Below are positions 1-38,140 of a stretch of 64,000 nt of DNA, one piece after another; position 1 is the stretch's first letter, and every line of letters starts with the position of its first letter. The translations under genes were made by a program, and so were the position numbers. Below the pieces are notes generated by a model. The model was not told the DNA's origin. It ran no database searches and saw only the letters and a list, made by a program, of their open reading frames with translations. The DNA lies in IMG/VR virus record IMGVR_UViG_3300031963_000004, positions 1-64,000 of that record. One strand, 5' to 3'.

Positions 1-1
1 C

Positions 2-265
2 ACCTGGAACAGATGATATAATATCTTTTACGGTCATTTGGCGAGTTTGTATTTTAGCATCAGCACCGAACTGTTTTGGAGCACCTGAACTTGGTCCTGG
101 TTGCGGCACGCCTTCAGACATAGATTCACCACCGCCATCACCGCCTCCATTGCCATCACCGCTATAACCACTATAATAAGCGTAGCCAGGAAAAAAGTAA
201 CCACCGTAGTGCTTCTTACTTTTTTTGGTTTTCTTTTTTTCTGTTATGAATTCGTAGGCTCTCAT
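2..265 (-). CDS. Hypothetical protein with MRAYEFITE leader (5' part only; runs off window start)
   Basis: Manually translated: MRAYEFITEKKKTKKSKKHYGGYFFPGYAYYSGYSGDGNGGGDGGGESMSEGVPQPG...; its ATG overlaps the TGA of 262..678 (ATGA). Not in the ORF track. Confidence 0.8.
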   Translation of the reverse strand, partial: MRAYEFITEKKKTKKSKKHYGGYFFPGYAYYSGYSGDGNGGGDGGGESMSEGVPQPGPSSGAPKQFGADAKIQTRQMTVKDIISSVPG

Positions 266-678
266 ATATTAAAATATTCTTTACCAATAATTGCACTTGG
301 TGGTATTACACCACTGTATATGTAAGTTTCTTCACCTGTATCATCATCTCTTTGAAAATGCGGATCGGCTCTTAGCAGTTGTTGATTTAACTTATTTTGA
401 TCAATTTTAAAGATTACACCACCTTGATTCATTAATTCTAATATTTGTTTTTCATGTTCAGCATCGGGCTCTATCACACTTGGATCAACAAAACTACTTG
501 CTATATCTGGATAATTACTTAGATACACATAATTTTTATCACTCCAGTCAAACATTCTTAGATTGCCACCAGGCAATAGCCCGCTTTTTAATATACTGGG
601 CTCAAACGCTCTCAATGTCGCATGATATAATGGTTCGTAATCATATGCTATTTCTAAAATAATTTCTGCGGCTCTCAT
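262..678 (-). CDS. Putative ADP-ribosyltransferase-fold protein (Tpt1/KptA-like NAD-binding domain)
   Basis: LYHAT..SILKSGLLP..VYLS..IFKID..YIYSGVIPPSAI follows the LYHGT/GL.P/VHLS/IL.ID/VPP pattern of the Tpt1/KptA ART domain; MRAAEIILE leader. Confidence 0.6.
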   Translation of the reverse strand: MRAAEIILEIAYDYEPLYHATLRAFEPSILKSGLLPGGNLRMFDWSDKNYVYLSNYPDIASSFVDPSVIEPDAEHEKQILELMNQGGVIFKIDQNKLNQQLLRADPHFQRDDDTGEETYIYSGVIPPSAIIGKEYFNI

Positions 679-1592
679 TAGTAATCATTCTCTGCTGAGT
701 GATCTAAATTTAGATACAGTTGCCATTGACGATCTGGAAACTTTGATAGATAAGCATTTAACATGGTATTCCAACTACCTGCCATTCTTTCTTGTATCTG
801 ACTAAGTGTGATTGGATCATCACGCATATCCATTATTTGACCATATTCAAGTTCAAGTTCATCCGTGTCATAACCTTCATCTTTGTATTGGTCAACAATG
901 TCATCTACATCACTATCACTTTTAACTGGATGATCATCTAATGATATACCAAAATGGAACTGATATTTTTCGCCTTGATACTCTGGTTGTTTAGGTATTG
1001 CTATTAATATAGGCGCTATACCATGATAATACTTAAACATGTTATTACCTTTAGTAGCGGCAGTACACCAGCGTGTACCTTGACCATAGTAGCATGATGC
1101 AGGTTCATCTTGTGGTACTATTACTCTCCAACTGTCATCTTCGTATAATGTAAATGCAGTACCTTTATCTTTTAGTTGTTGAGCATCAGGATCAGGATAC
1201 TCATCCATAACGCTCATAAAATCACCAAAGTTACTATACTTGTTAATATCGTTGCGTGGACTAGGTATTTTTTTACGCTGAACAAGTTTATAAAATTTAG
1301 TCAAAGAGTCAAATAGATAACCATCTAATACATCTTCAAGTTTTGTACTAGCATCATTCGCATATGTTCTTGCTATCCATTGCACATATTGTTTGTTAGG
1401 TGTAGGATCTGCTTCTTGAAATCTATCTAATGCAAAGCCTAATAATTCTTCTGGATCAATTTGTTGTATTGGATCGTCGCCGTAAATTCTTTGAACTGTA
1501 CGGTCCCCCAACATTTTTTTATAAATCGCTGCACCTAAGTTTTGTACAGTTTTATTACGATCATATTCAATTAAAAATTCTGTTGCTCTCAT
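678..1592 (-). CDS. PcfJ-like (GxGTxWCT motif) protein
   Basis: ASCYYGQGTRWCTAA motif followed by MFKYY and EKYQFHF; MRATEFLIE leader. Confidence 0.5.
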   Translation of the reverse strand: MRATEFLIEYDRNKTVQNLGAAIYKKMLGDRTVQRIYGDDPIQQIDPEELLGFALDRFQEADPTPNKQYVQWIARTYANDASTKLEDVLDGYLFDSLTKFYKLVQRKKIPSPRNDINKYSNFGDFMSVMDEYPDPDAQQLKDKGTAFTLYEDDSWRVIVPQDEPASCYYGQGTRWCTAATKGNNMFKYYHGIAPILIAIPKQPEYQGEKYQFHFGISLDDHPVKSDSDVDDIVDQYKDEGYDTDELELEYGQIMDMRDDPITLSQIQERMAGSWNTMLNAYLSKFPDRQWQLYLNLDHSAENDY

Positions 1593-1595
1593 AGT

Positions 1596-1955
1596 TTATG
1601 CTACTTCTATAATAGGTACAAAGGCACTTTGATACATGTTCCAATCTTTATCCATAACTGTATAAGCTATGTAACGTTTACTTTCAGTATCTTTAACTCG
1701 AAACTTTATAAAAAGATTATTAGTGTTATCATGTAAAAGAAACATATGTCCTGGAGCTAACTGCTTAAGTTTAGCTTTAGCTTTCGGTAATTTATTTAGT
1801 GTATTTATAACTTCATTAGGTGTCCAATCTCGTTGAGCCATTCTATCAAAAAGATGTTTATCTATTATGATAGTGTAATTTCCAACCTGAATGTTACCTG
1901 CATACTCAAATGGTCTGCGTGATTTTTCTTCGGTTAGAAATTCAGTAGCTCTCAT
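1596..1955 (-). CDS. Hypothetical protein, possible BECR/DUF4258-like RNase fold
   Basis: Start moved to ATG 1955 (MRATEFLTE, ATGA overlap with upstream stop); IDKHLFDRMAQR resembles the H-x2/3-RM-x-QR helix of DUF4258/RelE-like toxins; ends in YTVM strand. Confidence 0.55.
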   Translation of the reverse strand: MRATEFLTEEKSRRPFEYAGNIQVGNYTIIIDKHLFDRMAQRDWTPNEVINTLNKLPKAKAKLKQLAPGHMFLLHDNTNNLFIKFRVKDTESKRYIAYTVMDKDWNMYQSAFVPIIEVA

Positions 1956-2629
1956 AGATTTCTTTCCCATATTACAAAAGGATCGTTTACTATAATAGTA
2001 CCATCTGGACGCTGCATGTAATTGCCACGGTGTAAGTCTAAACTATAGTTATGTTTTTTAGCAAAATTTTTAACTATGTATACGGTTTGTAATAATGCTT
2101 TAGCCTTATCTAAACCGCCTAGATAATCAATAACTTGGTCAGCTTCAAACCATTCGGGTTCATCGTCATTATCAAAACTATCATGTTGAGCCCAGTCAGC
2201 AATTTTTTCCCATGCTTTAAAATAATCGCCTTTACCTGCGTACTTAGCTGCTTGATCTAATAGGTAAATTACCTTACCTACTGAGTCTGGTAACTCTCGT
2301 AGTTCTTCCATTCTGGCTTGAATATATTTTTTACCTTGAAATTCAAAACTTTCAAAGCCACTAAATTTTGGTAAGTGAGGATTATCAGTATTTTTATTAC
2401 AATAGTTGATCCAATTAACAAACATTTTTTGATCTGGACTAAAATCTAAATAATGTCCTTGACGATAACCAAACACAATAAACACTTGACCGTTTGGCTC
2501 AAGATATGCTTGTTTATCTATACCGCCACCTAGATACTTGTAACCTTTGTCCATCAAAGCCTGTCTAATACCGCCGTGAATCTTACCGGCCATTTCTTCA
2601 AGTTCATTATTAAACTCAAAAAATCTCAC
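1952..2629 (-). CDS. Protein-kinase-like protein
   Basis: Gly-rich loop LGGGIDKQAY, NPHLPKF, hinge MEEL, catalytic loop DLHRGNYM and NDPF (DFG equivalent). Confidence 0.7.
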   Translation of the reverse strand: MRFFEFNNELEEMAGKIHGGIRQALMDKGYKYLGGGIDKQAYLEPNGQVFIVFGYRQGHYLDFSPDQKMFVNWINYCNKNTDNPHLPKFSGFESFEFQGKKYIQARMEELRELPDSVGKVIYLLDQAAKYAGKGDYFKAWEKIADWAQHDSFDNDDEPEWFEADQVIDYLGGLDKAKALLQTVYIVKNFAKKHNYSLDLHRGNYMQRPDGTIIVNDPFVIWERNL

Positions 2630-3040: not shown

Positions 3041-3745
3041 CTAGTTCCGCAACTTAGCGAGTTTGAAAAAGCGTAAAATAGTTAGATATATCCAGCCTAT
3101 ATCTACTTCGTAAGGCTTCTTACTAAGTTTAGGATTTGCTGGATCTAGATGATGATTGTTATGTAGTTCTTCGCCACCGATGATTATGCCCCATGGTGCA
3201 ATGTTTTTACTTTGATCTTTGGTCTCACCGTTACGATAACCCCACCAGTGACCTATACCATTGATTACTCCTGCTGCCCAAAAGGGTATCCACAGCATTT
3301 GTACGCCCCATATTATGGCGCCCATCCAACCAAAGACAATGAGGTTGAACACAAGGAGAATACTAATGCCAAGTCTGCTGTGAGGTGTGTATAACTTACG
3401 CTCAATCCAGTCATTAGGAGTACCGATGCCATAAGTATTAACCATCTCTTTATCTTTGCTTGCGTCATTGTATAATAAAGCTCCCTTAAATAATACATGC
3501 CATATACCGTGTGTGACTGGGCTATGTGGATCACCTTCTAGTTCACAGAATCTATGATGTTTACGATGAACTGCGACCCATTGTTTAGTAACCATACCTG
3601 TTGTTAACCATAACCAAAAACGCATGAAGTGGCTAATGATTGGATTAAACTCTATACCTTTATGTGCTTGACCACGATGTAAGTATAAGGTTACACATAT
3701 GATTGTTATGTGTGTTGTGATTAGTGTATATAAAATTGCTGTCAT
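3041..3745 (-). CDS. Membrane fatty acid (acyl-lipid/acyl-CoA, delta-9 type) desaturase
   Basis: Histidine boxes LHRGQAH, HRKHH and EELHNNHH, NGIGHWWGYRN, and hydrophobic TM segments. Confidence 0.92.
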   Translation of the reverse strand: MTAILYTLITTHITIICVTLYLHRGQAHKGIEFNPIISHFMRFWLWLTTGMVTKQWVAVHRKHHRFCELEGDPHSPVTHGIWHVLFKGALLYNDASKDKEMVNTYGIGTPNDWIERKLYTPHSRLGISILLVFNLIVFGWMGAIIWGVQMLWIPFWAAGVINGIGHWWGYRNGETKDQSKNIAPWGIIIGGEELHNNHHLDPANPKLSKKPYEVDIGWIYLTILRFFKLAKLRN

Positions 3746-4549: not shown

Positions 4550-4615
4550 TTAATGTTCCCCGTATGGGACTACTGGACGATCATCATCTGGGTTTGGGGT
4601 ATTTGGATCTCTCAT
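4550..4615 (-). CDS. Putative 21-aa micro-ORF (MRDPNTPNPDDDRPVVPYGEH)
   Basis: ATG overlaps the dps stop (ATGA) and the ORF fills the gap to the next gene. Confidence 0.4.
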   Translation of the reverse strand: MRDPNTPNPDDDRPVVPYGEH

Positions 4616-5052
4616 GCTCTATCTACTTTAAGAAAACTACGTAACATCCAACCATGTTTACCATGGGCATCGATACGTTCTGCTATGTAGTTTGCGATAG
4701 CTTGATTTTCTTCGTTTGCTAAGGGAAAAATAGCATTTAATAATTCAATAATTTTTAAGTTATCTTCATATAATTCAGCAAGCATTAATTCAGCACGTGG
4801 TATCTTGACCTGATCTTGAATTATACTTAATTCCATAAATCTTGCTAAACTGCCAGGAGTATATTGGTCAAGAACACGAATAAATTCTGCTGTTCTATCG
4901 ATAGAATTTTCAAATACTTCTGTGTTTAACTCATCTAAGAATTTGTGATATTCTGAAAAATTAGGACCCTCGACATTCCAATGGAAGTTATGTGCTTTTA
5001 AATAAAACACAAAACTACTTGCTAATAATATTTTTAACTGTTCTGCTAACAT
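4612..5052 (-). CDS. dps: Dps / ferritin-like DNA protection protein
   Basis: KAHNFHWNVEGPNFSEYHKFLDEL..IDRTAEFIR and terminal HGKHGWMLRS signature. Confidence 0.9.
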   Translation of the reverse strand: MLAEQLKILLASSFVFYLKAHNFHWNVEGPNFSEYHKFLDELNTEVFENSIDRTAEFIRVLDQYTPGSLARFMELSIIQDQVKIPRAELMLAELYEDNLKIIELLNAIFPLANEENQAIANYIAERIDAHGKHGWMLRSFLKVDRA

Positions 5053-5060
5053 AAATCCTC

Positions 5061-6233
5061 TTAGTGTTTCAATAGTAATGTACTCAACACGCCAGGATCT
5101 CTAGCAGTTAAATCTGGTTCGCCAGGAGTAATAATAACATTGTACTTCATCTGTGGATTCTTTCTACCCTTAGTTTCCCATTCATTGTATGTAAGAATAC
5201 TATTTGCACTGATACCATATTCGCCGGCTAATCTTTGTTTTAGTTCAGGGATCTTGTCAGGTATAACCTGCCATTGGCCTTGTGGACCCTTAACAAGATT
5301 TTTCTTTTCATCCTTAACTAACAAATCATAGAATAAGTTTGTTGGAACAATGCGACTATTTTTTGTTTGTGCTAAACTTGGATCCGCTGCTTTAACTTTC
5401 TTTTCTTGTGAAGTATGTGCACCTTCACTCCAGTTAATCATAAAGTTATTTGGCTTCTGACCTAATACAACATCAGCAACTTTAGTATAAGCATAGAACA
5501 GTACATTTGGATTAGATTGTGCTAGATTATACGCTAATTGAATATATTCTGGGCTAAAGAAGTCACCTGAATCATGCCAGCGAATAGTTACATTATATCC
5601 TGCTTTTTGTCCTTTAGCAACCTCTTTTTTAATCTCATTATCTAGTTGATTGAAGAAACCACTTGGATCATTAAGTAAATATGTTAGCATTCTTGCTCTG
5701 CTTAACCAGGCCGCTTCAAATTGTACAAAGCCACCTTTCATAGCAAAGCAATCTACTTTACAACTACCTGCTCCGGGACATGTGTTTACTATAATTAATT
5801 TACCGGTAGATTCATCTAAAGCAATACCAACTAATGCAGCAAAGCCAACATTAAAGAATTGTTCTTCAGCACCATCACTGTGCTTCATCTTTTCATTTTT
5901 CTTTAATATCTTATCTGGTCTTATTGATAAAGCTTGTTTAATATCTTCTTCTCTATAACGTTTACCCGAAGCATCATAGTATTTTACAACACTACTACGG
6001 TGAACATATGGTAACTTATATTTGTCTGTTTTACCTTTTTCTTGACCTGCAATACGACCCATGTAATCTTGAAATTCTTCATCACCAAACTCTCTTGATG
6101 GTGCAGGTAATTTAGTAGCTTCATCTACTTCTTGCTCTCCTGCTTGTGCTACGAACTCCTCAGGGCTCATAATTTGAACACCCGGTAATGCACCAGGCAT
6201 CTCGCTTTCTAATAGTAAGTCTGTAATTTTCAT
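5061..6233 (-). CDS. Phage Gp88-like protein (Cys-cluster, possible Fe-S)
   Basis: TCPGAGSCKVDCFAMKG (Cx5Cx3C), IRWHDSGDFF, FYAYTK; MKITDLLLE leader. Confidence 0.65.
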   Translation of the reverse strand: MKITDLLLESEMPGALPGVQIMSPEEFVAQAGEQEVDEATKLPAPSREFGDEEFQDYMGRIAGQEKGKTDKYKLPYVHRSSVVKYYDASGKRYREEDIKQALSIRPDKILKKNEKMKHSDGAEEQFFNVGFAALVGIALDESTGKLIIVNTCPGAGSCKVDCFAMKGGFVQFEAAWLSRARMLTYLLNDPSGFFNQLDNEIKKEVAKGQKAGYNVTIRWHDSGDFFSPEYIQLAYNLAQSNPNVLFYAYTKVADVVLGQKPNNFMINWSEGAHTSQEKKVKAADPSLAQTKNSRIVPTNLFYDLLVKDEKKNLVKGPQGQWQVIPDKIPELKQRLAGEYGISANSILTYNEWETKGRKNPQMKYNVIITPGEPDLTARDPGVLSTLLLKH

Positions 6234-8035
6234 TTGTTTGGTGTACCTGTAACTTTATTGTGTATCATAGTCCTAATATCTGCTTTTACATCATCTCCGA
6301 ATGTAGGACTTGTAACTGTATTTAATGCTCTTCCGATAGTAGACAACAAACCTAATCCTTTTCTAACATCCATACCTTGCTTAGGTTCTTGTTGCTGTGG
6401 TTGTTGATCTTTAATATAATATGGATCAGTCTCCTGTTCCTTAACCTTGTACTTATTTTTTAACTCTCTTGTTTTAGCCCAACGCTCATCATCAGGCATA
6501 TCATATGTTGCTTTTAATTCTCTGTAATATTCAGGATCAGGCAATCCAGATTTTTTTCTTAATTCCTGATGACGCCTATGTAGTTTTTCTTGCGTTGATT
6601 CTTTGTCTGTTTCTTCTAAGTTAGCGTTACCTTGTTGAGGCACCATTCTAACGTTAACACCTTTTGGTACAGTGGTGTTAATGGTCATTTCATCACCTAA
6701 TTCTCTACTTGTATCCATCCCTCTTACTAGAGTATTTCCTTGACTATCTGGTCTAATAGATGCAGTTCTTCTATTAAAAGTTTCTTCACCATCTCTATTC
6801 ACGTAATTTTTTGTAGAATACATATAGGAAGGAGAAGATGCAGGAGGATTTTGTTCTAACACTGCCTCATGCTGCTCAATCATCTTACCTTCTAAATATT
6901 GTGCAACTGAGTTTAAGTAATCATTTGCTTTAGTTATTTTAGCCTGTACCCAACCATCAAGACCTTGTATTTCGCTTACATCTCTTATGCAGTGAAATAT
7001 TTTTTCTGCATCTTTGGCTGCTGCAATTAACTGTGACCTAGCCATTTCAACTTCGTGGTCAGATTTCTTAGGCATTAATTCTGGTTTAAATTTAATACCT
7101 TGACCTGGCATTAATAGTAATTCATCTTCGGTTACACGGGCTTCAATCATACCTTGTAGTATTGCACTTTCCGCTACACCTTTACTTCCACGATTTTTCC
7201 ACTTTACACCATGTATATTATCTAATCGTTTGACTTCAGATTTACTCAATGCAGTTAAATCTCTGGCATATTTTTGATTAAATCCTTCTGGATCTTCGCC
7301 AGCACCATACTTATCTGTAGCTTTATGTATTAATCCGGTTTTAGTTCTTGTTACTTCACCTTCCGCCACACCTTGCCCTCTGTCGTAAATACCAGGTGAG
7401 CCTACTTTACTTCTTGGATCTCCATATACTTTGTATACTTGATCGGTAGGTTCATTGCCTTTAGCAGGTCTAACATCAGTGATGATTGAGCCTCTTCCTA
7501 GCGCATAGTTAATCTTATCCTTAGCATCATATTCATCATCAGCGGAAACTAAGACAGTACGTGTATCGTCAGACAGATTGTTGTAATATGTTACAACAAA
7601 TTTTGTGTCTGTACCTTCCGTCACACCTCCACTCGTAGCAGATTTACTCTTGTTCATTTGACCCCCTCTGTTCTGTAAATCCTTAGCAATTTCTTTTTCG
7701 TCAAATGGTCTTCCAATGAATGAAGTAATTTTGTCAAAGAAGTTTTCATCAACTTGTGATTTTAAACCTTGCTTCATTTCTTCTTTTGATTTGCCGTATT
7801 TTTTCATAAACTCTCTATCTTTTAATTCACGTAGGTCCATAATTAGTTGCTTTACACTACCTTCTTTTAAGTTCTTAGGCTTTTTACCAGCTTTCTTCAT
7901 TGAAACGGCAATAGCTGCTTGTTGAGCAGGATTAGCTGCTTCTTCAGCCCTTCTTTTCATTTTACCCATTTTAGAAGGTGCGGGTGCAACTGATCCAGAT
8001 ACTGTTGCGCCCACTGACATTTCGTTTATTTTCAT
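6230..8035 (-). CDS. Modular putative head-internal protein (601 aa) with repeated xVxE motifs
   Basis: Start moved to MKINEMS (ATG 8035); spacers NLKEG, QVDEN, GVTEG, GVAEG, GVAES, RVTED, NLEET separate short domains. Confidence 0.6.
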   Translation of the reverse strand: MKINEMSVGATVSGSVAPAPSKMGKMKRRAEEAANPAQQAAIAVSMKKAGKKPKNLKEGSVKQLIMDLRELKDREFMKKYGKSKEEMKQGLKSQVDENFFDKITSFIGRPFDEKEIAKDLQNRGGQMNKSKSATSGGVTEGTDTKFVVTYYNNLSDDTRTVLVSADDEYDAKDKINYALGRGSIITDVRPAKGNEPTDQVYKVYGDPRSKVGSPGIYDRGQGVAEGEVTRTKTGLIHKATDKYGAGEDPEGFNQKYARDLTALSKSEVKRLDNIHGVKWKNRGSKGVAESAILQGMIEARVTEDELLLMPGQGIKFKPELMPKKSDHEVEMARSQLIAAAKDAEKIFHCIRDVSEIQGLDGWVQAKITKANDYLNSVAQYLEGKMIEQHEAVLEQNPPASSPSYMYSTKNYVNRDGEETFNRRTASIRPDSQGNTLVRGMDTSRELGDEMTINTTVPKGVNVRMVPQQGNANLEETDKESTQEKLHRRHQELRKKSGLPDPEYYRELKATYDMPDDERWAKTRELKNKYKVKEQETDPYYIKDQQPQQQEPKQGMDVRKGLGLLSTIGRALNTVTSPTFGDDVKADIRTMIHNKVTGTPNK

Positions 8036-8046
8036 ATTGTGATCTG

Positions 8047-11000
8047 TTATTCGCTTATCCATCTTGCCTGGAACCAAGACCTGCCATCAAATTGCCCTCT
8101 TTGTAATGCGCCGTTACCAACGTTGACAATGTTTATATAATCAGTTGAACCATTTAGATATATAATTTTTGTTATCTGTTGAACCACTGCATTAAAAGAA
8201 CCAGCCGCAGCCACCAGGTTGTTATTTTTCTTAATCGCTATACTTGCTTCGGTATTTCTATAAATATCATAACAGGCAGTAATTTCCCAGTAACCAGCCT
8301 TCTGTGGCGTAAATGTATAAGTTGAAGTATCGAACCAAGCACTTGGTACATTGACATTAGCACTCACAACGCTGTATCTACACACATCTTCAGTAAAGTC
8401 ACCTGGCAAAGTATAAGTCACACTTGCATACGCTTCAAGAAAATAAAATCTTAAATCTGGGGGCGTAAATGTAAATACCCCGGTAGTATTATCATAAGAA
8501 AAATCACCATAACTACTTGGTACGCCGGGTTCACCAACACTTAAAGATGTTAATGCAATTCCACCTGCACCTAATACACTTGTACCTGAACTGTCATTAA
8601 TACCACCACCACTTGGTAATGTTAAGTTACCGTTGTTGTCAAAAGTCCAAGTATGGTTTTGATTGTTAGTCTTGATATAAATATTACCGTTGTTATTTAC
8701 ATCAATGTGATAGTTATCGTTACCTAAAATTAAACTACCATTTCCGTTAACACCATTTCCTGCTGCTATATGAATGTGCGGGGAATCAAACGCAGTAGTA
8801 GGATATATGTTAATAAACTGACCATAATCAGCAAAGTTGTTACTAGATGCACCTCCTGGAGCCATAGTTATGACACCATTTGGGAAATCACCACTATTAG
8901 GTGCAGGGCTACTTAGTTTAGATCCATCAAATGTAATATTACCTAAATCAGGACCAGCTGAAGCACCGATAACATTTTCAGTCATTGTGAAAGTATTTGT
9001 TGATACAGTTGGACCTGCATTATCTAGTGTTACTGGACTACTTATAGCGTTTACTGTGGCACTAGTAGCAGTTGTTGTTTCAGTATTATAGCCTGGATTA
9101 ACGGACTCAATAATATATTGACCGTAAACACCATTAGTGTTTTCACCGTTGATCGGGAAGTTAATTACTAAACCAGCATAGTTATCATTATTGTTAAAGT
9201 ACAAATATGTACTTGCTGCAATAGTAACCGATGTATCGTTACAATCAATACATTGTGCTTCATAATCATCTTGTGGATAAATTTCTCCATCACTTCCACC
9301 AAAGTTGCGAGTAATTCGTTTTGACCATACTTCACTGCCATCTGTGCCACTTATGCACATAACATATAGTGTATAATCATCATCTTCATAATTAGTAAAG
9401 ATGTAATTACCGTTTGGAGTAGCTGTACCTTTAAAATTACTGTCCCAACTAATATCATCATTAGGATCTACTCTAACTTGCCAAATTATATTACCATTGC
9501 TGCTGTTAATTTTTGTTACGATACCTTCTTCATCTATTGCAATAAGATTGCCATCTGACAGCAAATCAATACTAGTTATTGGATTACCTGTATCATTAGG
9601 TGAATCAACATGTACTGCCCATTGTTGAGTACCGTTTATATCGTACTTAATAACTATACTTCCTTTATTTCCTGCCCAGTAATAGCCACCAGCGTAGGAA
9701 TTTCCATTACTGTCTACTACAACTGTATTAAGTCGTTCGGATTCAGCATCGCCTACGCTCTTGCCCCAAGCGTTACTTCCCAATCTAGCAATATAAGCCT
9801 GTTGATTTAATTGGTAGTTAAAACTTAATGTGTTACCAATTTCTGTACTCCAGTCCTTATCTCCCCATCCCAAACCAACTACATCGCTGATTGCTGTACC
9901 TTGAATATTTGAAGCCCAACCTGCTACGTTGTCACTATTATTGTTTAATGCATCTACATTAAAATCAAATGTTAGATCGTTAACACCATCAACGCCGCCT
10001 AATTGGCTACCTAATACTCGTACATTAACAGGATTGCCCCAACCATAAATACTACCACTCCAGCCATTAGACCTAAGAATAGTATATGTTCCATTTTGGT
10101 TAGTAGACACACTTAACCATAGTCCGTTACTTTGACCATCAGGAGCTGCCCCTACCTCAAAATAGTTTAATCTAATCTGATAGTTTCCACCAATAGTATA
10201 GTAAATACTTTCACCAGGTTGTACATTGCTGGCATTATATTCTGACCAACTTACAACCAACTTGTTTAATCCGCTTCCAGTTAACGGAGTGAAAGATTTT
10301 TGTAACATTTCATTGTAAGTATGGCCCACTAATACTGCGAAGGGTTGATTACCAGCGTCAAGCCCAAACACAGCATCATTTAATACTACAGAGGAATTAC
10401 TACCAGTTTCAATGTCAAACATTGATCCTACAGTGCCGTCAGTTGGATTAATAAACCATGTGAATCCACGATCTTTATCAACATTATTGTCATAGTAATT
10501 ACCAATAGTTACTAAAAAGTTTGTACCATTGACATTTACATGTTCTAAGGAAACTATTTTAGGATATTCACCATTAGTATTTGATGATAGTAAATTCTTG
10601 TTCCACTCAACACTACCGGTGCTATTTAATTTTATTATGCCACCAAATCTTCTACTTTCATTATCATCATAATATGAATAACTCATATAACTGTTGCCAC
10701 CGCTATCCATAGCAACTGCTTCCATATCAACATTATCATTCGTACTATGAATAAATTGATTTATAAAACCATATTGCTGTGGTGTAATGTATGCGGTAGT
10801 TTGAATTGTGCCATCTGGGAACGTTACTGAACCGTCAGTATTTACTTGTAATGTATGACTACCTTCACTGATTGAATTTCCACTGCCACCTCCTAAACCA
10901 CCTACATTCGCTACTGCATTATTAACATAGGTTTCTGTTGCATAACCTGTTAAGCTTGGTATAGTTGGTTTATTGGTTAAATCATTATAATCACCACTAG

Positions 11001-11829
11001 TAGCAACAGTTGATAAAGTTGGGGTACCAGATATATTACCGTATGTTAAAGCACTTGATGTAATATAACCTTGACTTGTTACATATGTTTCAGTTGCATA
11101 ACCACTTAAACTAGGAATATCAGATACATTTGCTTTGTTTGCTAATTGATTTGTTATAGTAGTAGTAAAAGCACTATCATTACCTATAGCATTGGCTAAT
11201 TCATTTAATGTGTCTAATAATGCAGGAGCACTGTTTACTACATTTGCTATTGCATTACTTACGAATGATTCAGTAGCTAAACCAGTAATACTAGGGATAC
11301 TAGGTTTATCACTTAAATTGTTATAACTACCAGTAGTAGCAACAACACTATAAGATGGTAAATCAGATAAATCATTATAACTGCCAGTGGTAGCAACTGT
11401 GCTAAAAGTTGGTTTATTTGCAATATTATCCCAATCACTACCAGGGATCTGTCCTATTGCGTTAGTAACAAAACTTTCTGTAGCATAGCCATTTAAACTT
11501 GGTATGTCTGCCACATTAGCTTTGTTTGCTAATTGATTGTTAATTGTTGAGAAGAAGCTAGGATCTGAATTAATAGAATTTGATAATTCTTGCAATGTGT
11601 TCAATAATGCGGGTGCAGCACCTACTACATTTGATATAGCGTTATTTACAAATGTAGTCGTAGCAAAATCGCTACCATAATATGCTAGGTTAGACCAAGC
11701 AGTTTGTCCGTCACCAAATTTAAATTTGTAAGTATCTGTTTCAATACCTGGTTCACCTAATGCTAAAACTGGATTTGATGTTGTCCAATTTTGTGCTGTA
11801 TCTCGTCTTAATTTAATCTGCGTTGCCAT
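8047..11829 (-). CDS. Tail fibre / receptor-binding protein (1260 aa)
   Basis: Mtd_N-like start (QIKLRRDTAQNWTTSNPVLALGEPGIETDT..KFGDG), YNDL..KP and APALLDTLNELA fibre repeats, beta-propeller-like middle, C1q-like end (FTPQKAGYWEITA). Confidence 0.8.
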   Translation of the reverse strand: MATQIKLRRDTAQNWTTSNPVLALGEPGIETDTYKFKFGDGQTAWSNLAYYGSDFATTTFVNNAISNVVGAAPALLNTLQELSNSINSDPSFFSTINNQLANKANVADIPSLNGYATESFVTNAIGQIPGSDWDNIANKPTFSTVATTGSYNDLSDLPSYSVVATTGSYNNLSDKPSIPSITGLATESFVSNAIANVVNSAPALLDTLNELANAIGNDSAFTTTITNQLANKANVSDIPSLSGYATETYVTSQGYITSSALTYGNISGTPTLSTVATSGDYNDLTNKPTIPSLTGYATETYVNNAVANVGGLGGGSGNSISEGSHTLQVNTDGSVTFPDGTIQTTAYITPQQYGFINQFIHSTNDNVDMEAVAMDSGGNSYMSYSYYDDNESRRFGGIIKLNSTGSVEWNKNLLSSNTNGEYPKIVSLEHVNVNGTNFLVTIGNYYDNNVDKDRGFTWFINPTDGTVGSMFDIETGSNSSVVLNDAVFGLDAGNQPFAVLVGHTYNEMLQKSFTPLTGSGLNKLVVSWSEYNASNVQPGESIYYTIGGNYQIRLNYFEVGAAPDGQSNGLWLSVSTNQNGTYTILRSNGWSGSIYGWGNPVNVRVLGSQLGGVDGVNDLTFDFNVDALNNNSDNVAGWASNIQGTAISDVVGLGWGDKDWSTEIGNTLSFNYQLNQQAYIARLGSNAWGKSVGDAESERLNTVVVDSNGNSYAGGYYWAGNKGSIVIKYDINGTQQWAVHVDSPNDTGNPITSIDLLSDGNLIAIDEEGIVTKINSSNGNIIWQVRVDPNDDISWDSNFKGTATPNGNYIFTNYEDDDYTLYVMCISGTDGSEVWSKRITRNFGGSDGEIYPQDDYEAQCIDCNDTSVTIAASTYLYFNNNDNYAGLVINFPINGENTNGVYGQYIIESVNPGYNTETTTATSATVNAISSPVTLDNAGPTVSTNTFTMTENVIGASAGPDLGNITFDGSKLSSPAPNSGDFPNGVITMAPGGASSNNFADYGQFINIYPTTAFDSPHIHIAAGNGVNGNGSLILGNDNYHIDVNNNGNIYIKTNNQNHTWTFDNNGNLTLPSGGGINDSSGTSVLGAGGIALTSLSVGEPGVPSSYGDFSYDNTTGVFTFTPPDLRFYFLEAYASVTYTLPGDFTEDVCRYSVVSANVNVPSAWFDTSTYTFTPQKAGYWEITACYDIYRNTEASIAIKKNNNLVAAAGSFNAVVQQITKIIYLNGSTDYINIVNVGNGALQRGQFDGRSWFQARWISE

Positions 11830-14846: not shown

Positions 14847-16622
14847 TTAATTTTCTTCCAAATAACTTTCAGATTTTACGTATTGATCGTAGGCCTGTTG
14901 AATTTCTTCATCACTAGCTAATTCAATGTCACTGATGTCCCAGCCTGTAGCTTTAGCAATCTGTTTAATCATAAAGCTACGCTTTGTAAAGTCCATTGGG
15001 TGACGGTCTGACAATTCTTTATTCATATCTTCGTTAGTTTCTTCAGGTTTGCTTGGACCATAGATAATTGTGTTAGGATTAATATTATATTTTGTGATCA
15101 ATAACTCAATAACTTTGTCTAAGTTTTTATTAGGGATGCCCTTAGCTACAGGAAAAGTAACGGTATTCTTTTTATGTTTTCCCTTAACGAATATGTCAAT
15201 TAAATCACCTGGATTTAACACGATACCTTCTGCTAAATCTTGTTGACCTCTTATGGCTTGTAATAAAGCACGGGCTACCACACGATCCTTTTCTTGTTCT
15301 TCGTCACCAAGTTGGGCATAATTAATTTTCATCAATTTGGCTCTCTGAGCAAGTTTGGCATCTAATTTACCTGCTTGACGTAATTTTTCTGTATCCTCAA
15401 ACTGATCTGGGTTCTGTACAAATTTTCTTGCTGTTACGTTCCAACCTTTGTGAATAGCATCTGCAATTTGATCTATATCTGTAACACCTGCATCTATCAT
15501 CTTTTTAGCATACGCAGCACTCATTAAATTTGCTTGCCAACCAAAACTATTGCCTGGCGTACTTCTACCATATCCGTATGCATTGTCTAACGCTTCATCA
15601 CTGATAGCAGCTAATTGTTGAATCGACAACTCTACCGCTTCTGACATATTTTGCTTTCCTTGTGAAATGCAATGTTCTACCCATGGTATGAAAGTATCTT
15701 TGATCCAATCCTGATGTTGTTTGCTCTTGTCTAATGTTGAACTATCTGCGATTCTACCATTAATGGTAACAGGTTCAATGCTATTAACTGCATCTATAAT
15801 TTTTGCCTGTACATCTGGATCACTATCTTTAATAACTCGTTGCAACTGACCCATTGCTTCATCTTGTCTACCCTGCATTGCAAGTATTGCTACTCTTTGC
15901 AATCCACTGTAAGTAGGATCATACATGTTACCAAACATCTTATTGATATCGTCAGCAGTACCTTCAGTAAGTTTGGCTTCATTAATCTTAGCTTTTAATG
16001 CTACTATCTTTTTGTAGATACTTTCTGTTAATTGCAAATTCTTGTCAAAGATAGGCTTCATAAGCTTGCCTGCTTTGCCATACAAGTCATTAAGAATTTG
16101 TGCCTTCATCTTTTCGTCGCCTTTTGCATAAGCTGCACGAATTTGACTAGCATCTGTCATTTCACTTCCTGCTATAGGAAACTGTGCTACGTCAGTTGTC
16201 AATACGTACCCATGTTTAGTCATTGGTTGAAGTTTGTCAGAGTACGGTTGCAAGTAGCCAGGACTACCATCTCTCTTAGGTGCAAAACTGAATCGTGGGT
16301 CACTTCCCATGTCCTTCCCACTTACACCAAATACTAATGCTGTTTGATTAGGATCTATTCCTGCTGCTTCAAATCGTTTAATATATTCATCAGCACCGTA
16401 TGTATTTCTAACACTAATTATATTTTCTTTAGGTATACCCAATGCCATTGCCATCTTAGCTCTATCACCTGCTGAGAAGGGGCTTTTTGGTTGTTCTTGC
16501 TTTTCACTTACTGCTAAGTAGGTATGAGCCAAACCAAAATTACTAGCTAACTGTTTAAAACTAGCAGCATGACCTTTGTGAAAGGGATGGAAACGACCAG
16601 GATAGATAGCAATTACACGCAT
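14847..16622 (-). CDS. HxGH nucleotidyltransferase (cytidylyl/NMN-adenylyltransferase-like) fused to RyR-like and other modules
   Basis: N-terminal YPGRFHPFHKGH; internal AIHKGWN...YAQLGDEEQEKDRVVAR resembles the RyR repeat; multiple xLxE spacers. Confidence 0.7.
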   Translation of the reverse strand: MRVIAIYPGRFHPFHKGHAASFKQLASNFGLAHTYLAVSEKQEQPKSPFSAGDRAKMAMALGIPKENIISVRNTYGADEYIKRFEAAGIDPNQTALVFGVSGKDMGSDPRFSFAPKRDGSPGYLQPYSDKLQPMTKHGYVLTTDVAQFPIAGSEMTDASQIRAAYAKGDEKMKAQILNDLYGKAGKLMKPIFDKNLQLTESIYKKIVALKAKINEAKLTEGTADDINKMFGNMYDPTYSGLQRVAILAMQGRQDEAMGQLQRVIKDSDPDVQAKIIDAVNSIEPVTINGRIADSSTLDKSKQHQDWIKDTFIPWVEHCISQGKQNMSEAVELSIQQLAAISDEALDNAYGYGRSTPGNSFGWQANLMSAAYAKKMIDAGVTDIDQIADAIHKGWNVTARKFVQNPDQFEDTEKLRQAGKLDAKLAQRAKLMKINYAQLGDEEQEKDRVVARALLQAIRGQQDLAEGIVLNPGDLIDIFVKGKHKKNTVTFPVAKGIPNKNLDKVIELLITKYNINPNTIIYGPSKPEETNEDMNKELSDRHPMDFTKRSFMIKQIAKATGWDISDIELASDEEIQQAYDQYVKSESYLEEN

Positions 16623-17195: not shown

Positions 17196-17900
17196 TCAGA
17201 CTTTTTGCTGAATTTTATAGATTTTTCCTACGTAATCACCCATACTCAATCTCAGTAAGGTTTCATCCGACTCGTTATCATAATCTACGAAAAAAGCATT
17301 ACTACAATATCTATATCTCCAATAACGAATTTTCTTGTCTGTACCATTTAACCAAGTCTTTAGTGCCGAACAGGGGTAAAAAGTCGTGTTGTGTCTTTGA
17401 AAGAACTCAGCCATTTCATCGTGCATTTCTAAACTAATATTTTTTGCTCTTAGATATAGTCTAAATTTATGCTTTGGATTTTTTCTATATAGTGTATCCG
17501 GATTAGCTAATAAATTTACTCTTGTGTATTTTATTTTTGGATTGTTTAACTTACACAGAGTTTCTAGTTCGGCTAATTTTGACAAATCGTTACTGTACAC
17601 GGATCCTGTCTTATAATCAATTCGTACCATACAGTCAGGTCCATTATTAATAGTTTTCCAAATAGTAAAACTATCTAAAAAAGCCTTGTTACTAGGAAAA
17701 TGAACCTTATTTGCAGAAGTATCAACAGGTATAGAAATAAGAATTGTGTCCCGAACTCTATTTAATAGAACGTTTTCTAACTCTCTAACCGTTTTTGCAT
17801 ATCTAGTACAATGCAGTAACTCGGCAGTAAAACTAGCTTTGTATAGAAACTTATTAAAAAACAAAGTTTGCTTGTCTACTACCTTGAATACCTTATTCAA
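17196..17900 (-). CDS. Hypothetical protein (234 aa)
   Basis: Long ORF overlapping clpA stop; TTG start. Confidence 0.7.
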   Translation of the reverse strand: MNKVFKVVDKQTLFFNKFLYKASFTAELLHCTRYAKTVRELENVLLNRVRDTILISIPVDTSANKVHFPSNKAFLDSFTIWKTINNGPDCMVRIDYKTGSVYSNDLSKLAELETLCKLNNPKIKYTRVNLLANPDTLYRKNPKHKFRLYLRAKNISLEMHDEMAEFFQRHNTTFYPCSALKTWLNGTDKKIRYWRYRYCSNAFFVDYDNESDETLLRLSMGDYVGKIYKIQQKV

Positions 17901-20169
17901 TTGTAATCATCCCATCTGCGCCAACCTTAGCGACTACATTTCTTGTTACATTGAATTCTATTTTATTATCATCTCCCATCACTGCCATAACAGTGCTGTT
18001 CTTGATGTTTTCAAAAAGAATCTTTTTACCTAATGGGACACGAATCAACTCGTCAATTTTTCTTTGCAATGGTCTAGCACCCATTTTCTTATCATACCCA
18101 TGTTCAGCGAGATACTCAACGACTGGTTCTGATAGATTGAGATAAATGCTATGTGTGCTTCTTAAGTTACGGCGCAACTCATCAGCAAACTTAATAACAA
18201 TTTTCTTAATTGCTAGATGGTCAAGTTTGTTAAACTTACACACCATATCTAGACGGTTTCTAAATTCAGGCTTGAAGAATTCTTTCATTGCTCTATCATC
18301 TTCACCTGTCTTTTCTTGTGCACCAAAGCCAATATTATTTCTTTCACTGTCGCTTGCACCTAGATTACTAGTCATAATAACGATACAGTTTTTAGCGTTT
18401 GCCTCTTTACCGTTACTACCTGTAATTCTACCTTCGTCAAGTAATTGCAAAAATACGTCAAATACTTCCGGATGTGCTTTTTCAACTTCATCAAATAATA
18501 AAATTGAGTAAGGGTTTTGTTGAACGTCACTAATTAATTTACCACTGCCTGCGTTACCTTCACCATAACCAACATAGCCTGGAGGCGCACCGATGAATTT
18601 AGCAATAGCATGTTTCTCGCTATATTCACTCATATCATACTTGAGCAATTTCATGTCAAGGTTTTTACTGAGTAATCTAGCCAATTCAGTTTTACCTGTA
18701 CCAGTAGGTCCTAAAAATAGATAACTACCGATTGGTCTATTTTCATTGTTGATGCCAGCAAAGCTTACATAGATTCTTTCTAGAACCTTTTCTACTGTTT
18801 CATCCTGACCATATAGTTTATCTTTGATATTCTGTTCAAGGTTAGTAATTCTGTCACTATTTTCTTTATCATTCAATTTATCTGCTGGTACACCAGTCAT
18901 ACGTTCTACTTGCTCATGGACAAGTTGCTTAGTAATAAAGATACCTTTATTTTCTAACACTCGTTGCTTAGCACAAGCAGCATCAAGCAAATCAATTGAC
19001 TTATCTGGATTCTTACGGTCATGAATATATCGTTTAGCGCAATTAGCTGCTGCTTCAATTGCTTCATCCAAGATTTTTACATCATGGAAGTCATTTAATC
19101 TTTCACTTAAACCCTTAAGAATACGAATAGTTGTGTCATGATTAGGTTCATCGATGCTTACACGATAGAATCTACGCATCAATGCACGGTCTTTTTCAAA
19201 ACTCTCGTAGAATTCTTCCCAGGTTGTACTTGCAATTACTTTTAATGTACCTTTTGTAATTGCAGGCTTAATCATATTAGCAAAATCTACTGCACCATTT
19301 GTAGCACTACCTGCCTTCATTGTATGTGCTTCGTCAATGAACAGAATAGCTTTCTTTTTTGTATTCAATGCTTGGATAACATGTTTAATCTTTTCTTCAA
19401 AGTCACCGCGATACTTTGAACCTGCAAGCAATGATCCAATTTCTAATGAGAATACTTCATGATCTAGTAAGAATTCTGGCACGACACTATCTACAATCAT
19501 TTGTGCAAGACCTTCGGCGATAGCAGTCTTACCAACACCAGGGTCACCAACCATTAATACATTAGATTTAAACTTCTTAGCCAACACATTGATAATATCA
19601 TCAAGTTCATTGCTACGACCAATCAATGGTTCAATCTTGCCTTCTTTGGCTAATTTAGTAAGATTAGTAGTGTGTTCTTCTAATATTTCGTCGGCTTGTG
19701 AATCTGTCAGTCCACCTACATACTCTCCACCCTTATAATGTTTCTGCCAGAAAGGGACGAATTCGTTTTTAACAACTCCGTATTTCAATAAGAAATAGTG
19801 AGCATGACTATTTGTTTCAGCAAGAATACTTAGGTACAGGTCAATTGTAGTTACTGTTTTTCTACCAGTAAATAGAACCTGTGTGACACTTCGGTTAATA
19901 ACTCTTTCTAAACTATTTGTTTTTCTAGGAGTAACTTCTTCACCCTGATCTACGTTAACCTGTATTACTCGCAGACTATCCAAATAATCCGAAATTTCTT
20001 TTGTTAGATTTTCGGTATCTACATTGAATTGTCCTAAACATTTCTGAAATGGCACATGTTTAATCAAAGCCAATAGTAAATGCTCAACAGTACAATACTG
20101 ATGGCTACGATTTTTGGCAAAAGTAATTGCTTGCTCAATAATTGCTTCGATTTCTACAGAGTTGTTCAC
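17893..20169 (-). CDS. clpA: ATP-dependent Clp protease ATP-binding subunit, ClpA-like
   Basis: Clp N-domain, two AAA+ modules (GDPGVGKT/LFIDEAH; GPTGTGKT/LLFDEVEK), IGF loop (NNIGFG), GARPL, no middle domain. Confidence 0.92.
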   Translation of the reverse strand: MNNSVEIEAIIEQAITFAKNRSHQYCTVEHLLLALIKHVPFQKCLGQFNVDTENLTKEISDYLDSLRVIQVNVDQGEEVTPRKTNSLERVINRSVTQVLFTGRKTVTTIDLYLSILAETNSHAHYFLLKYGVVKNEFVPFWQKHYKGGEYVGGLTDSQADEILEEHTTNLTKLAKEGKIEPLIGRSNELDDIINVLAKKFKSNVLMVGDPGVGKTAIAEGLAQMIVDSVVPEFLLDHEVFSLEIGSLLAGSKYRGDFEEKIKHVIQALNTKKKAILFIDEAHTMKAGSATNGAVDFANMIKPAITKGTLKVIASTTWEEFYESFEKDRALMRRFYRVSIDEPNHDTTIRILKGLSERLNDFHDVKILDEAIEAAANCAKRYIHDRKNPDKSIDLLDAACAKQRVLENKGIFITKQLVHEQVERMTGVPADKLNDKENSDRITNLEQNIKDKLYGQDETVEKVLERIYVSFAGINNENRPIGSYLFLGPTGTGKTELARLLSKNLDMKLLKYDMSEYSEKHAIAKFIGAPPGYVGYGEGNAGSGKLISDVQQNPYSILLFDEVEKAHPEVFDVFLQLLDEGRITGSNGKEANAKNCIVIMTSNLGASDSERNNIGFGAQEKTGEDDRAMKEFFKPEFRNRLDMVCKFNKLDHLAIKKIVIKFADELRRNLRSTHSIYLNLSEPVVEYLAEHGYDKKMGARPLQRKIDELIRVPLGKKILFENIKNSTVMAVMGDDNKIEFNVTRNVVAKVGADGMITIE

Positions 20170-37400: not shown

Positions 37401-38134
37401 GGTTCATATGGTCTTTCAGGGTTTGTTGGTGTTACAACTTCATTACCATCTTTATCTTTCGTAAGAAGATACGTTAGGCCGCTACCTGCCAATGCACTTG
37501 CAGCCATAGCCTTTCCTATGTTGCCTGGAGAAGTTTTAATACTTCCAGACTTACTTGCTGCTGGTTCACCTTTTTCTGCCGCCGCCGCCATTTTTTCCGC
37601 TGCTCCGGCTTCTTTCTCTGCTGCTTTGATATAATCAGCAGCCAATGATGAAGTTTTAGGATCAAATGTAGTTGGTACTTCTTTACCTGTAGCAGTACTT
37701 TTAGGTGTTACAACATTCTTAGGTCTGAAATCTGGCCTAGGAGCAGCTGCCGGCTTACCTTTAGAAGCAGAACCTTGCATGCCAGTAAATGTAGTCGGCA
37801 CATCTTTACCTGTAACAGTACTCTTGGGTACAGCTTTTCCATCCTTAGGCTCAAATTTTGGTCTAGCATCAGCAGGATAAGGTTTCGATGGTCTTTCTGC
37901 ATTAGGCTTGACATCAGATGGATATTTTAGTGGTGCGTTATATTTTACATCTTTGGGTTGAGGAGCTTTGTTTTGAGCATATGGACCTTGAGACATTTTT
38001 TCTTGTCTACCAGCGAATCTTTGAGTAGCTGTTCCACCTTTTTCTCCGGCGCCGGCAACTCTAGTAGCACCTTTTTCTATTCTGGTGGCTGCATCAGTAA
38101 CTGCCTCATATATGTTTATGTCTTTGATTTTCAT
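34487..38134 (-). CDS. Large low-complexity putative head-internal/scaffold-like protein (1215 aa)
   Basis: MKIKDINIYE leader; K/E/P/A-rich; many (V/L/I/M)xE-(G/A/S/N) sites; ends EWKKLSGIK. Confidence 0.6.
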   Translation of the reverse strand: MKIKDINIYEAVTDAATRIEKGATRVAGAGEKGGTATQRFAGRQEKMSQGPYAQNKAPQPKDVKYNAPLKYPSDVKPNAERPSKPYPADARPKFEPKDGKAVPKSTVTGKDVPTTFTGMQGSASKGKPAAAPRPDFRPKNVVTPKSTATGKEVPTTFDPKTSSLAADYIKAAEKEAGAAEKMAAAAEKGEPAASKSGSIKTSPGNIGKAMAASALAGSGLTYLLTKDKDGNEVVTPTNPERPYEPWEQNFPASDVPNTTNVVPNTTNVVPNTTNVIPDTDYRPSHLGPGEKPAYDTEQTRDDNVFPVRDHPTFKRDSAPAPIQNKVDPYANVDWEATAARERLKGSPGLQSALKAAQGPGPGYSSEPVDKAELSKWYQRDGTGDNDKTLGNELPPIENRSRYAEPEPKAEPKAGPDLTDKKYQRGVVGTRSEDEIEWDTKHPYRGGQYPGPGWQEKEREQGEKNWENLKALGSKLNPLNWFKEDLEQLNRIKSLASTTPKKEISESHVNQTDMRQMLELMYEASKMADLKGKKHTGKYGKAYDTDEEGEEKEVKSRGGQESDATKDAKKWQGASDAGSKVIKGQPGKSAKGKVHTISDKKPKSAPADEEAWLRKEEEREKAAKAAAKKKKLKDWIDSTEEMIAERAKNKYAIGMAAAKKQAGYGSKPATDLPKKVIKKGHEIAKKVDEEKYTVNSREVSKGEYDAHMKAAGKKPSPDNVKEALKGGQKNLDVAEPKGKLDSKDFAALRNKKKVKEGINFSQMMRETQMSIEEMLMELQSHIEEYKTTGHMSEALRDALDLHKYSKKDKIMGESPMMPQPVVEEPVAEGPFAWAAKQAKDEGRDVFKFGGETHPVTVKEASKMKEGSIKGGDKPGELTGTWSSDPPKKGQKDVPMPVPMDPVYPNAIDINKPNKSDKKPMKENVDMDRQFESWANDLDSLLNENISINTNTSSDGNDSVTVTATEGDAGELIALLKNAGMGGIFGGGEQSQSSPYGAPMTSDSSDNGGIEMVSVDGPEVIDGGDSVLELIKKMAGLSAAPQQSSGEDYADEVPVDNAGDTMHKPEGEEDEGEEEDQIEKGSDEEDHRKEKEVDEAYGQADEGNEFTEKLSQTPPGEEFEIDGKKYKDTSSLEEGDEPMCNECGMNESSCGCDHVEESFENEPNEATQDIEFMTNFITGGLNRQKRDQTTLPHTSVKVTESKSKDVLYEWKKLSGIK
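37310..37372. repeat. 3 x 21-bp in-frame tandem repeat (VPNTTNV)
   Basis: aacattagttgtattagg(a/g)ac x3. Confidence 0.9.
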
Positions 38135-38140
38135 TTTTTA

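Follow-up and report, generated by a model that had tools for sequence, protein, structure and literature searches.

P0001, the 67-kDa product of a minus-strand open reading frame (ORF) at positions 6230-8035 (-) of a 64,000-nucleotide stretch of the virus record IMGVR_UViG_3300031963_000004, is a chain of modules that have been exchanged among related phage proteins at short sites ending in Glu. The stretch (here called the window) makes up the first 64 kb of an IMG/VR record 223,151 bp long, which is estimated to be 63% complete. The reading that we favor, at somewhat better than even confidence, is that P0001 is a capsid-targeted polyprotein of a T4-core jumbo phage that would be cleaved by a gp21-type protease, packaged, and injected; we infer the cleavage, the identity of the protease, the packaging, the ejection, and the cargo identity of the beads from sequence.

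Under this proposal, a leader of the T4 capsid-targeting sequence (CTS) type would bring P0001 into the prohead core, where a gp21-family serine protease would cleave flexible linkers behind the Glu of G-[VM/L/I]-x-E sites that precede G/S/A/N. Cutting would free about 8 to 10 small proteins of 4 to 10 kDa, and the freed beads would either be retained in the capsid and pass into the next host along with the DNA, like T4 IPI-III and Alt, or be cleared as propeptide pieces. Because each bead brings its own site, beads act as cassettes that can be inserted, replaced, or reordered without disturbing the rest of the chain.

Modules of P0001 and their exchange at Glu sites

The gene is read from an ATG at 8035 through 601 codons to its stop and is present in a single copy within the record. 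An alternative TTG frame extending to 8077 would overlap the upstream tail-fibre-like gene (8047-11829), and we take ATG 8035 as the start because the N-terminal consensus of relatives supports it. A word-based search returned 416 relatives, the best 119 of which were compared to P0001 by BLAST. Similarity was piecewise, falling into blocks at residues 1-94/97 (A), 98-140 (B), 137-226 (C), 221-289 (D), 296-394 (E), 403-487 (F), 480-537 (G), and 538-601 (H), and these eight modules occur in differing orders and combinations in the relatives.

The chain opens with a leader (residues 1-5, MKINE; 8021-8035, on the minus strand like all modules below), which is a shortened, T4 CTS-like form of the family leader and ends in I-x-E. 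Module A (residues 6-97; 7745-8020), common to about 70 of the 119 relatives, has E58 in its interior and ends in QVDE|N, and the rare module B (residues 98-140; 7616-7744) ends in the disordered linker GGVTE|G. Module C (residues 141-225; 7361-7615) is a small alpha/beta bead between GVTE|G and GVAE|G, and module D (residues 226-289; 7169-7360) lies between GVAE|G and GVAE|S. Bead E with its entry sites (residues 290-394; 6854-7168) opens with the double site MIE|A-R-VTE|D, in which each Glu is at least 90% conserved, contains a helical hairpin at residues 327-393, and ends in AVLE|Q. This bead is the hallmark module of the family, found at no fewer than 591 IMG/VR loci and usually in one copy per genome. 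Module F (residues 395-475; 6611-6853) consists of a disordered linker and then a beta bead at residues 423-456, and ends in NLEE|T; module G (residues 476-533; 6437-6610) is a three-helix bead ending in KVKE|Q; and module H (residues 534-601; 6233-6436) is a C-terminal helical bead. Modules A and E form the conserved part, and the C-terminal parts vary. Fragments predicted between the sites range from 39 to 91 residues, with isoelectric points of 4.8 to 10.4.

The original prediction had proposed that nine recurring (V/L)-x-E motifs separate distinct blocks, and all nine were located: NLKE|G (E58), QVDE|N (E97), GVTE|G (E140), GVAE|G (E225), GVAE|S (E289), RVTE|D (E303), AVLE|Q (E394), NLEE|T (E475), and KVKE|Q (E533). 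Homology breakpoints of the 119 relatives coincide with six of them (E97, E140, E225, E289, approximately E394, and E533). Sites thus do lie between modules, but the motif actually used at junctions is narrower than proposed, namely, G-[VM]-x-E followed by G/S/A/N. The idea of the motifs as separators holds at module borders but not for NLKE|G, which sits inside the conserved module A, and RVTE|D is better described as part of the nearly invariant double site that opens bead E.

Comparison of orthologues bore out the further suggestion that modules can be gained or lost between sites, revealing gain, loss, replacement, and reordering exactly at V-x-E sites. P0002, a syntenic orthologue with the same GP88 and ferritin neighbors, is about 100% identical to P0001 outside bead C and carries unrelated sequence in the place of bead C, exactly between GGVxE|G and QGVAE|G. 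In P0003, modules C and D are both replaced, between RGVAE|A and VYE|S. Bead C recurs with 99% identity in P0023, where G-V-x-E|G motifs again bound it and the flanks are unrelated, and P0023 as a whole is a bead chain with G[VM]xE|G before each bead. Module D is found after bead E in P0018, P0019, and P0022, flanked by the same motif, and P0097 has the order second leader type, G, F. After bead E, nearly all relatives have a short Gly- or Gln-rich linker ending in [VM]-x-E followed by G/S/A/N, or in NFEE|G, and then wholly unrelated sequence. The blocks of P0001 are independent modules exchanged at the sites.

This mobility bears on an account in which the sites would merely chop a disposable N-terminal region, as in SPN3US gp53 and gp54, leaving one C-terminal cargo. 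All known cleavages in SPN3US and phiKZ remove N-terminal propeptides, some at multiple sites (PMC10052503, PMC5694885), and the conservation of A and E, with variable C-terminal parts, would fit such a scheme. However, beads C and D are folded or conserved cassettes that are shared between proteins at 78 to 99% identity, which is unexpected for disposable spacers, and the beads toward the C terminus (F, G, and H) are likewise separated by sites. We therefore regard this account as very unlikely.

Motif frequencies tell different things at the level of the single protein and of the family. The original prediction was open to the objection that the motif might be no more frequent than Glu content predicts, and for plain [ILV]xE in P0001 this is nearly the case, whereas GV[AT]E[GS] is far above chance (3 observed versus 0.004 expected). 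The pattern [VL]xE[GSND], which was defined post hoc, occurs 6 times versus 1.4 expected (P = 0.003). In a set of 83 non-redundant family members (44.8 thousand residues), [ILVM]-x-E occurs 1155 times versus 668 expected and G-[VM]-x-E-[GSAN] occurs 181 times versus 6.9 expected (z = 63). Among the same 83 members, this pentapeptide is at or below expectation when E is replaced by Q or K or when V/M is replaced by A/T, and its enrichment is absent or weak with D at P1. The family z-scores overstate independence because the sequences are related, and their direction is still unambiguous.

Breakpoints defined from homology alone give the same picture. In 418 non-redundant breakpoint zones, a site lay within 6 residues in 214, versus 144 expected (p ~ 2e-12), and control tripeptides with D, K, or Q in the third position were not enriched. 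High-scoring segment pairs most often end at offset 0/-1 relative to the Glu of the closest [ILVM]-x-E and most often start at 0/+2. The decisive evidence is thus positional and comparative, rather than a motif count.

A shared motif at breakpoints could in principle act at the DNA level, as a recombination signal offering microhomology for cassette exchange, the peptide itself being irrelevant. In P0001, the three GVxE[GS] sites share 13 to 14 of 15 bases (GGT GTG RCG GAA GGT) and use GC-rich codons in a genome of 36% GC, as such a signal might. However, 15 bases are short for homologous recombination, and the Val, Gly, and P2 codons vary freely across loci while the residues are kept; the Val codons at the site, for example, are GTA (8), GTT (8), GTG (6), and GTC (1). 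Such synonymous variation indicates selection on the peptide and not on the DNA. Leaders and Tat (twin-arginine translocation) signals, described below, would also go unexplained, and we consider a purely DNA-level role extremely improbable.

Leaders, a gp21-type protease, and internal Tat signals

The N termini of the family are as characteristic as its junctions. An [ILVM]xE tripeptide falls within residues 2 to 14 in 109 of 128 distinct family N termini (85%), compared with 27% of random windows in the same proteins and 24% of the ORFs of the genome. Two leader types are seen: MKI-x-Q-I-I-x-E followed by TT-x-GS, of which P0001 has the version shortened to MKINE, and MF-[VI]-NDLFKKK-[LI]-x-E. 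These leaders resemble the 10-residue T4 capsid-targeting sequence MKTYQEFIAE, which directs IPI-III, and any protein fused to it, to the prohead, where gp21 then removes it (PMC9026906).

The genome carries head genes in T4 order, encoding a portal, an acidic core protein, Peptidase_S77, a gp22-like coiled-coil scaffold, and a Gp23 capsid protein (match at 4e-100). The prohead protease gene lies outside the window (G000 174303-174938), with a match to PF03420 (Peptidase S77, the T4 gp21 family) at 174342-174803 (2e-30, 102.7 bits), and Peptidase_S77 is also present in 3 of 3 complete relatives with bead E. T4 gp21 cuts after Glu in L/I-x-E, chopping the scaffold and removing N-terminal propeptides (PMC9026906). 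As an unbiased control, the 156 larger ORFs of the genome were ranked by motif excess. The scaffold ranks first of the 156 for [ILV]xE (26 versus 11, P = 1e-4), and its excess is steeper for [ILV]xE with a small residue at P1' (14 versus 2.6, P = 7e-7); LVAE|G, FVAE|S, LLAE|S, and VLTE|S are among the scaffold sites. The protease itself comes third. Within the first 43 residues of the capsid protein are four L-x-E tripeptides, before the point aligned to the mature N terminus of T4 gp23*, which falls near LLE34|N or LAE43|S. From these scaffold and capsid propeptide sites, the specificity deduced here for the protease matches the junction motif of P0001. Separately, a 5246-residue ORF outside the window (G000 132253-147993, -) has 92 [ILV]xE tripeptides versus 63 expected (P = 4e-4).

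Five relatives of four architectures (P0071, P0080, P0100, P0101, and P0117) contain internal Tat signals at residues 164 to 304, each of the RRGFLKG type followed by a hydrophobic stretch and lying 2 to 4 residues after GV[AD]E. A Tat signal normally must be N-terminal, so that this placement is best understood if a cut produces a fresh N terminus. The position of these signals directly after a site is therefore the strongest argument from sequence for a cut after Glu.

These observations can be set against the possibility that P0001 is an uncleaved, multidomain protein of the polyvalent type that would function, or be packaged, as a single 67-kDa chain, with G-V-x-E-G as a conserved flexible linker or hinge. 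Phages often encode multidomain proteins in which small domains have been shuffled (PMC5512222), P0001 by itself has a motif count close to chance, and cleavage itself is something that we infer. On the other hand, a linker needs neither an invariant Glu nor a hydrophobic P3, and D, Q, and K are not enriched at the position of the Glu. An uncleaved protein would also leave unexplained the Tat signals just after internal sites, the [ILV]xE-ended leader in 85% of members, and the same motif in the phage's own scaffold. We consider this alternative unlikely.

Indirect evidence from virions comes by way of cyanophages. Bead E is present in S-SM2 SSM2_109 and S-SCSM2R ORF117, both between terminase genes, and SSM2_109 is a member of the cluster T4-GC119, for which 13 peptide counts were recorded in purified S-SM1 virions (Sullivan et al. 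2010, PMC3037559, Suppl. Table 8). Like the P0001 family, T4-GC119 (S-SM2 SSM2_109; Syn9 gp114, between g16 and g17), which has bead E in its S-SM2 and S-SCSM2R members, is a mosaic of small domains common to many phages, DUF6321 and DUF5872 among them, and is variable in gene length, which ranges from 276 to 2985 nt among 16 cyanophages (PMC3037559). Unlike P0001, the S-SM2 and S-SCSM2R members have neither module A nor the N-terminal portion of bead E, and the cluster occupies another genome position, in Kyanoviridae of about 170 to 240 kb. The cytidylyltransferase cluster T4-GC190, homologous to a frequent neighbor of bead E genes, is also an S-SM1 virion protein (PMC3037559).

Cleavage might instead occur in the cytoplasm, by another glutamyl endopeptidase of host or phage, in which case the beads would be effectors of the current infection, acting within the cell or exported from it. 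Tat cargos fit export from the producing cell, and the P0001 gene is located apart from the head module, with metabolic and chaperone-like genes close by. However, the neighboring genes that were scanned include no other candidate endopeptidase (the ClpA/B-like neighbor is an AAA+ unfoldase), the motif equals that of the scaffold and capsid propeptides, the leader looks like a capsid-targeting sequence, and T4-GC119, one member of which shares bead E, was found in virions. Cytoplasmic processing thus appears quite unlikely.

Predicted bead structure, possible functions, and points against packaging

An AlphaFold2 model of P0001, built from an 83-sequence alignment, has a mean predicted local distance difference test (pLDDT) score of 63.6 and resolves into folded beads and low-scoring linkers. 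The folded parts are residues 58-122 (helical), 144-190 (beta-beta-alpha-beta), 255-270, 327-393 (helical hairpin, pLDDT > 90), 423-456 (beta), 481-529 (three helices, pLDDT ~91 to 94), and 562-596. Linkers with pLDDT < 50 span residues 123-142, 194-249, 274-290, 395-422, 468-474, and 542-561, and 5 of these 6 hold or abut a site (E140, E225, E289, E394, and E475). The leader site E5, which was not among the nine motifs first listed, is also in or beside a low-pLDDT segment, and E303 and E533 are in coil with pLDDT ~56 to 63. A complex prediction that paired the gp21-like protease with residues 272-311 gave a score of 0.00, which did not reach the mark, and was counted neither way.

Searches of Pfam and PHROGs with the whole protein and with each of the eight beads found no family at E <= 0.001, Foldseek with the whole model found nothing in the PDB at E <= 0.001, and a protein atlas returned only unnamed viral clusters with scores of <= 0.8. 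Across the 83 members, a Pfam scan identified only DUF6321, DUF3008, DUF6115, DUF5872, and the Tat signal. The predicted fold of bead C (residues 143-194) superimposes on T7 Gp2 (VIA Z 6.6; root mean square deviation, 1.7 Å; 50 of 51 residues; 24% identity), a value below the specific level, and its fold score for T7 Gp2 is tied with that for a ribosomal eL20-type domain. BLASTP gave no alignment of bead C with T7 Gp2, so that there is no detectable sequence similarity between the two; phmmer against the PDB gave chance-level matches, and jackhmmer within the family recovered P0023 only. The modeled likeness of bead C to the RNA polymerase inhibitor T7 Gp2 may therefore serve as a lead only.

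We speculate, at well below even confidence, that the chain is a device for cassette delivery of effectors. Beads placed behind one leader would be freed by the head protease, Tat signals unmasked by cutting would re-address cargo in the next host, for example, to the periplasm, and individual beads, among them the Gp2-like C, would engage host targets as the DNA enters.

Several observations weigh against P0001 as a packaged and cleaved polyprotein. Plain [ILV]xE occurs 12 times in P0001 versus 7.9 +/- 2.4 in shuffles (P = 0.075), and in the genome-wide ranking for this tripeptide P0001 reaches P = 0.05 only. E70 and E355 are [ILV]-x-E sites in a confidently folded helix or loop and are therefore unlikely to be accessible. 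P3 at family sites is mostly Val or Met, versus the Leu or Ile preferred by T4 gp21. The P0001-type gene is single copy per genome rather than one of several sharing a leader, and it lies outside the head module, after a tail-fibre-like gene and amid genes for Dps, transferases, and a ClpA/B-like ATPase. Tat cargo is hard to reconcile with release only within a closed capsid. The S-SM1 virion link runs via the cluster, bead E having been seen in the S-SM2 and S-SCSM2R members, with that of the S-SM1 member putative. Finally, the bead E profile finds no match in Vibrio 2.275.O or PA5oct, the cultured jumbo phages nearest to this one, and among cultured phages we found no close relative with proteomics; tblastn against cultured phages with a typical short member, P0036, gave no match.

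Genome setting, known systems, and significance

The capsid protein is 65 to 67% identical to its counterparts in Vibrio phage 2.275.O, Pseudomonas phage PA5oct, and Sinorhizobium phage Phosso, and on this basis we place the phage among the T4-core jumbo phages. The three complete relatives with bead E have genomes of 333 to 525 kb. The record has a GC content of about 36%, nearly all of its genes are on the minus strand, and no alternative genetic code is needed to read them; near-identical DNA was absent from the phage collection searched. The T4 late-promoter consensus TATAAATA is depleted in the window, with 3 matches versus 10.8 expected (all 100 shuffles had at least 3), and none of the 3 is upstream of P0001. 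The phage clade probably uses a late-promoter motif other than that of T4.

Eleven bases upstream of P0001 is the gene for the tail-fibre-like protein (8047-11829, -), which has 1260 residues, an Mtd_N domain, and repeated fibre segments. Downstream, the start of a GP88 gene (PF17338; 5061-6233, -), whose product has a leader of the same type as P0001 (MKITDLLLE|S), overlaps the P0001 stop. Also nearby, and likewise on the minus strand, are genes for a Dps/ferritin (4612-5052), a fatty-acid desaturase (3041-3745), a 591-residue cytidylyltransferase-domain protein (14847-16622), and a ClpA/B-like double AAA+ protein (17893-20169). Dps/ferritin, cytidylyltransferase, and ClpA/B-like genes recur beside bead E genes in many loci: of 81 loci, 57 have Dps/ferritin, 51 a phrog_1574 protein, 35 cytidylyltransferase, and 25 the ClpA/B-like AAA+ protein, and GP88 is linked to the bead E gene only in the 7 closest. 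A 2613-residue ORF lies near the window end (55754-63595, -).

Leaders closer to that of T4 (MRAYEFITE, MRATEFLIE, MRATEFLTE, and MRAAEIILE) are found in window ORFs within 1-1970 (-), where tandem ORFs at 1-265, 262-678, 678-1592, and 1596-1970, all on the minus strand, match no Pfam family. An ORF with a leader of the same set (MRAKEFVVE) and likewise no Pfam family lies at G000 90124-90495 (-). These MRA-leader ORFs may encode a set of internal proteins packaged in the head, similar to the T4 internal protein locus. A likeness of the ORF at 262-678 to ADP-ribosyltransferases was based on a look at the sequence only; Pfam found nothing, and we make no such claim. Farther along, a 255-residue ORF with the leader MKITEIITE|A (38141-38908, -) lies upstream of a 1215-residue ORF (34487-38134, -) that is rich in K, E, A, G, and P, is of low complexity, and has the leader MKIKDINIYE|A and 11 occurrences of [ILV]xE[GSAN] versus 4.4 expected; the products of both may be further core or inner-head proteins. 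The region spanning 34487-38908 has a higher GC content (0.40) and a strong AT skew. The leader-bearing window ORFs have no mutual similarity beyond the leader, and a strict leader pattern was observed in 6 of 296 ORFs versus about 0.5 by chance (a rough estimate).

Compared with T4 IPI, IPII, IPIII, and Alt, the P0001 system shares a T4-type head module with a gp21-family protease in the genome, a short leader ending in a hydrophobic residue, x, and Glu, a predicted cut after Glu, a common leader in front of cargos that are unrelated to one another, and a hyperplastic locus. In T4, an Asp at P1 of the CTS prevents processing. Homology to these four T4 proteins was not detected, as neither the whole protein nor any bead matched a Pfam or PHROG family at E <= 0.001. 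Unlike T4, in which each gene has one cargo and one cut, the P0001 family has up to about 10 beads per chain with internal sites, and it differs further in having mostly Val or Met at P3 and Gly at P4, a single copy, and a location outside the head gene block.

In the giant phages phiKZ, 201phi2-1, and SPN3US, many head proteins are cut after Glu at a three-residue motif, and the products are ejected into the host (PMC5694885, PMC10052503). P0001 resembles these systems in belonging to a giant phage and in having several sites per chain. However, their protease is diverged (MEROPS S80), with S/A/G-x-E or A-x-E specificity, and their cuts give one mature product plus propeptide debris, with cassette exchange at the sites undescribed there. 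The protease here is of the S77 type, and G[AT]xE[GSAN] occurs only 4 times versus 10 expected in the 83 members, which does not fit S80-type specificity.

Polyvalent proteins of phages and conjugative elements likewise consist of many shuffled small domains, with predicted delivery alongside the DNA and possible processing (Iyer et al. 2017, PMC5512222), and the many small shuffled domains within one P0001-family polypeptide recall them. None of their hallmark domains (zincin-like MPTase, ART, ArdC-N, methylases, nucleases, and others) was found in the Pfam scan of the 83 members, and, unlike polyvalent proteins, P0001 would be processed in trans, with the head protease acting at a linker motif that recurs along the chain. 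We found no description of the P0001 family or of such a polyprotein in the published literature. What is new relative to the known systems is the combination of many beads with internal sites, the G-[VM]-x-E plus small residue motif, and documented cassette exchange at the sites.

If the polyprotein reading is true, one leader and one protease motif would yield many small head proteins that are exchanged in evolution like cartridges, which would explain the length variability of both the P0001 locus and cyanophage T4-GC119. The motif G-[VM]-x-E plus a small residue would then predict the mature proteome and injected effectors of a large uncultivated clade of aquatic jumbo phages, and dozens of small domains would become candidates for factors of early host takeover or anti-defence. 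In the internal Tat signals there would be a first hint that capsid proteolysis prepares cargo for secondary targeting in the host.

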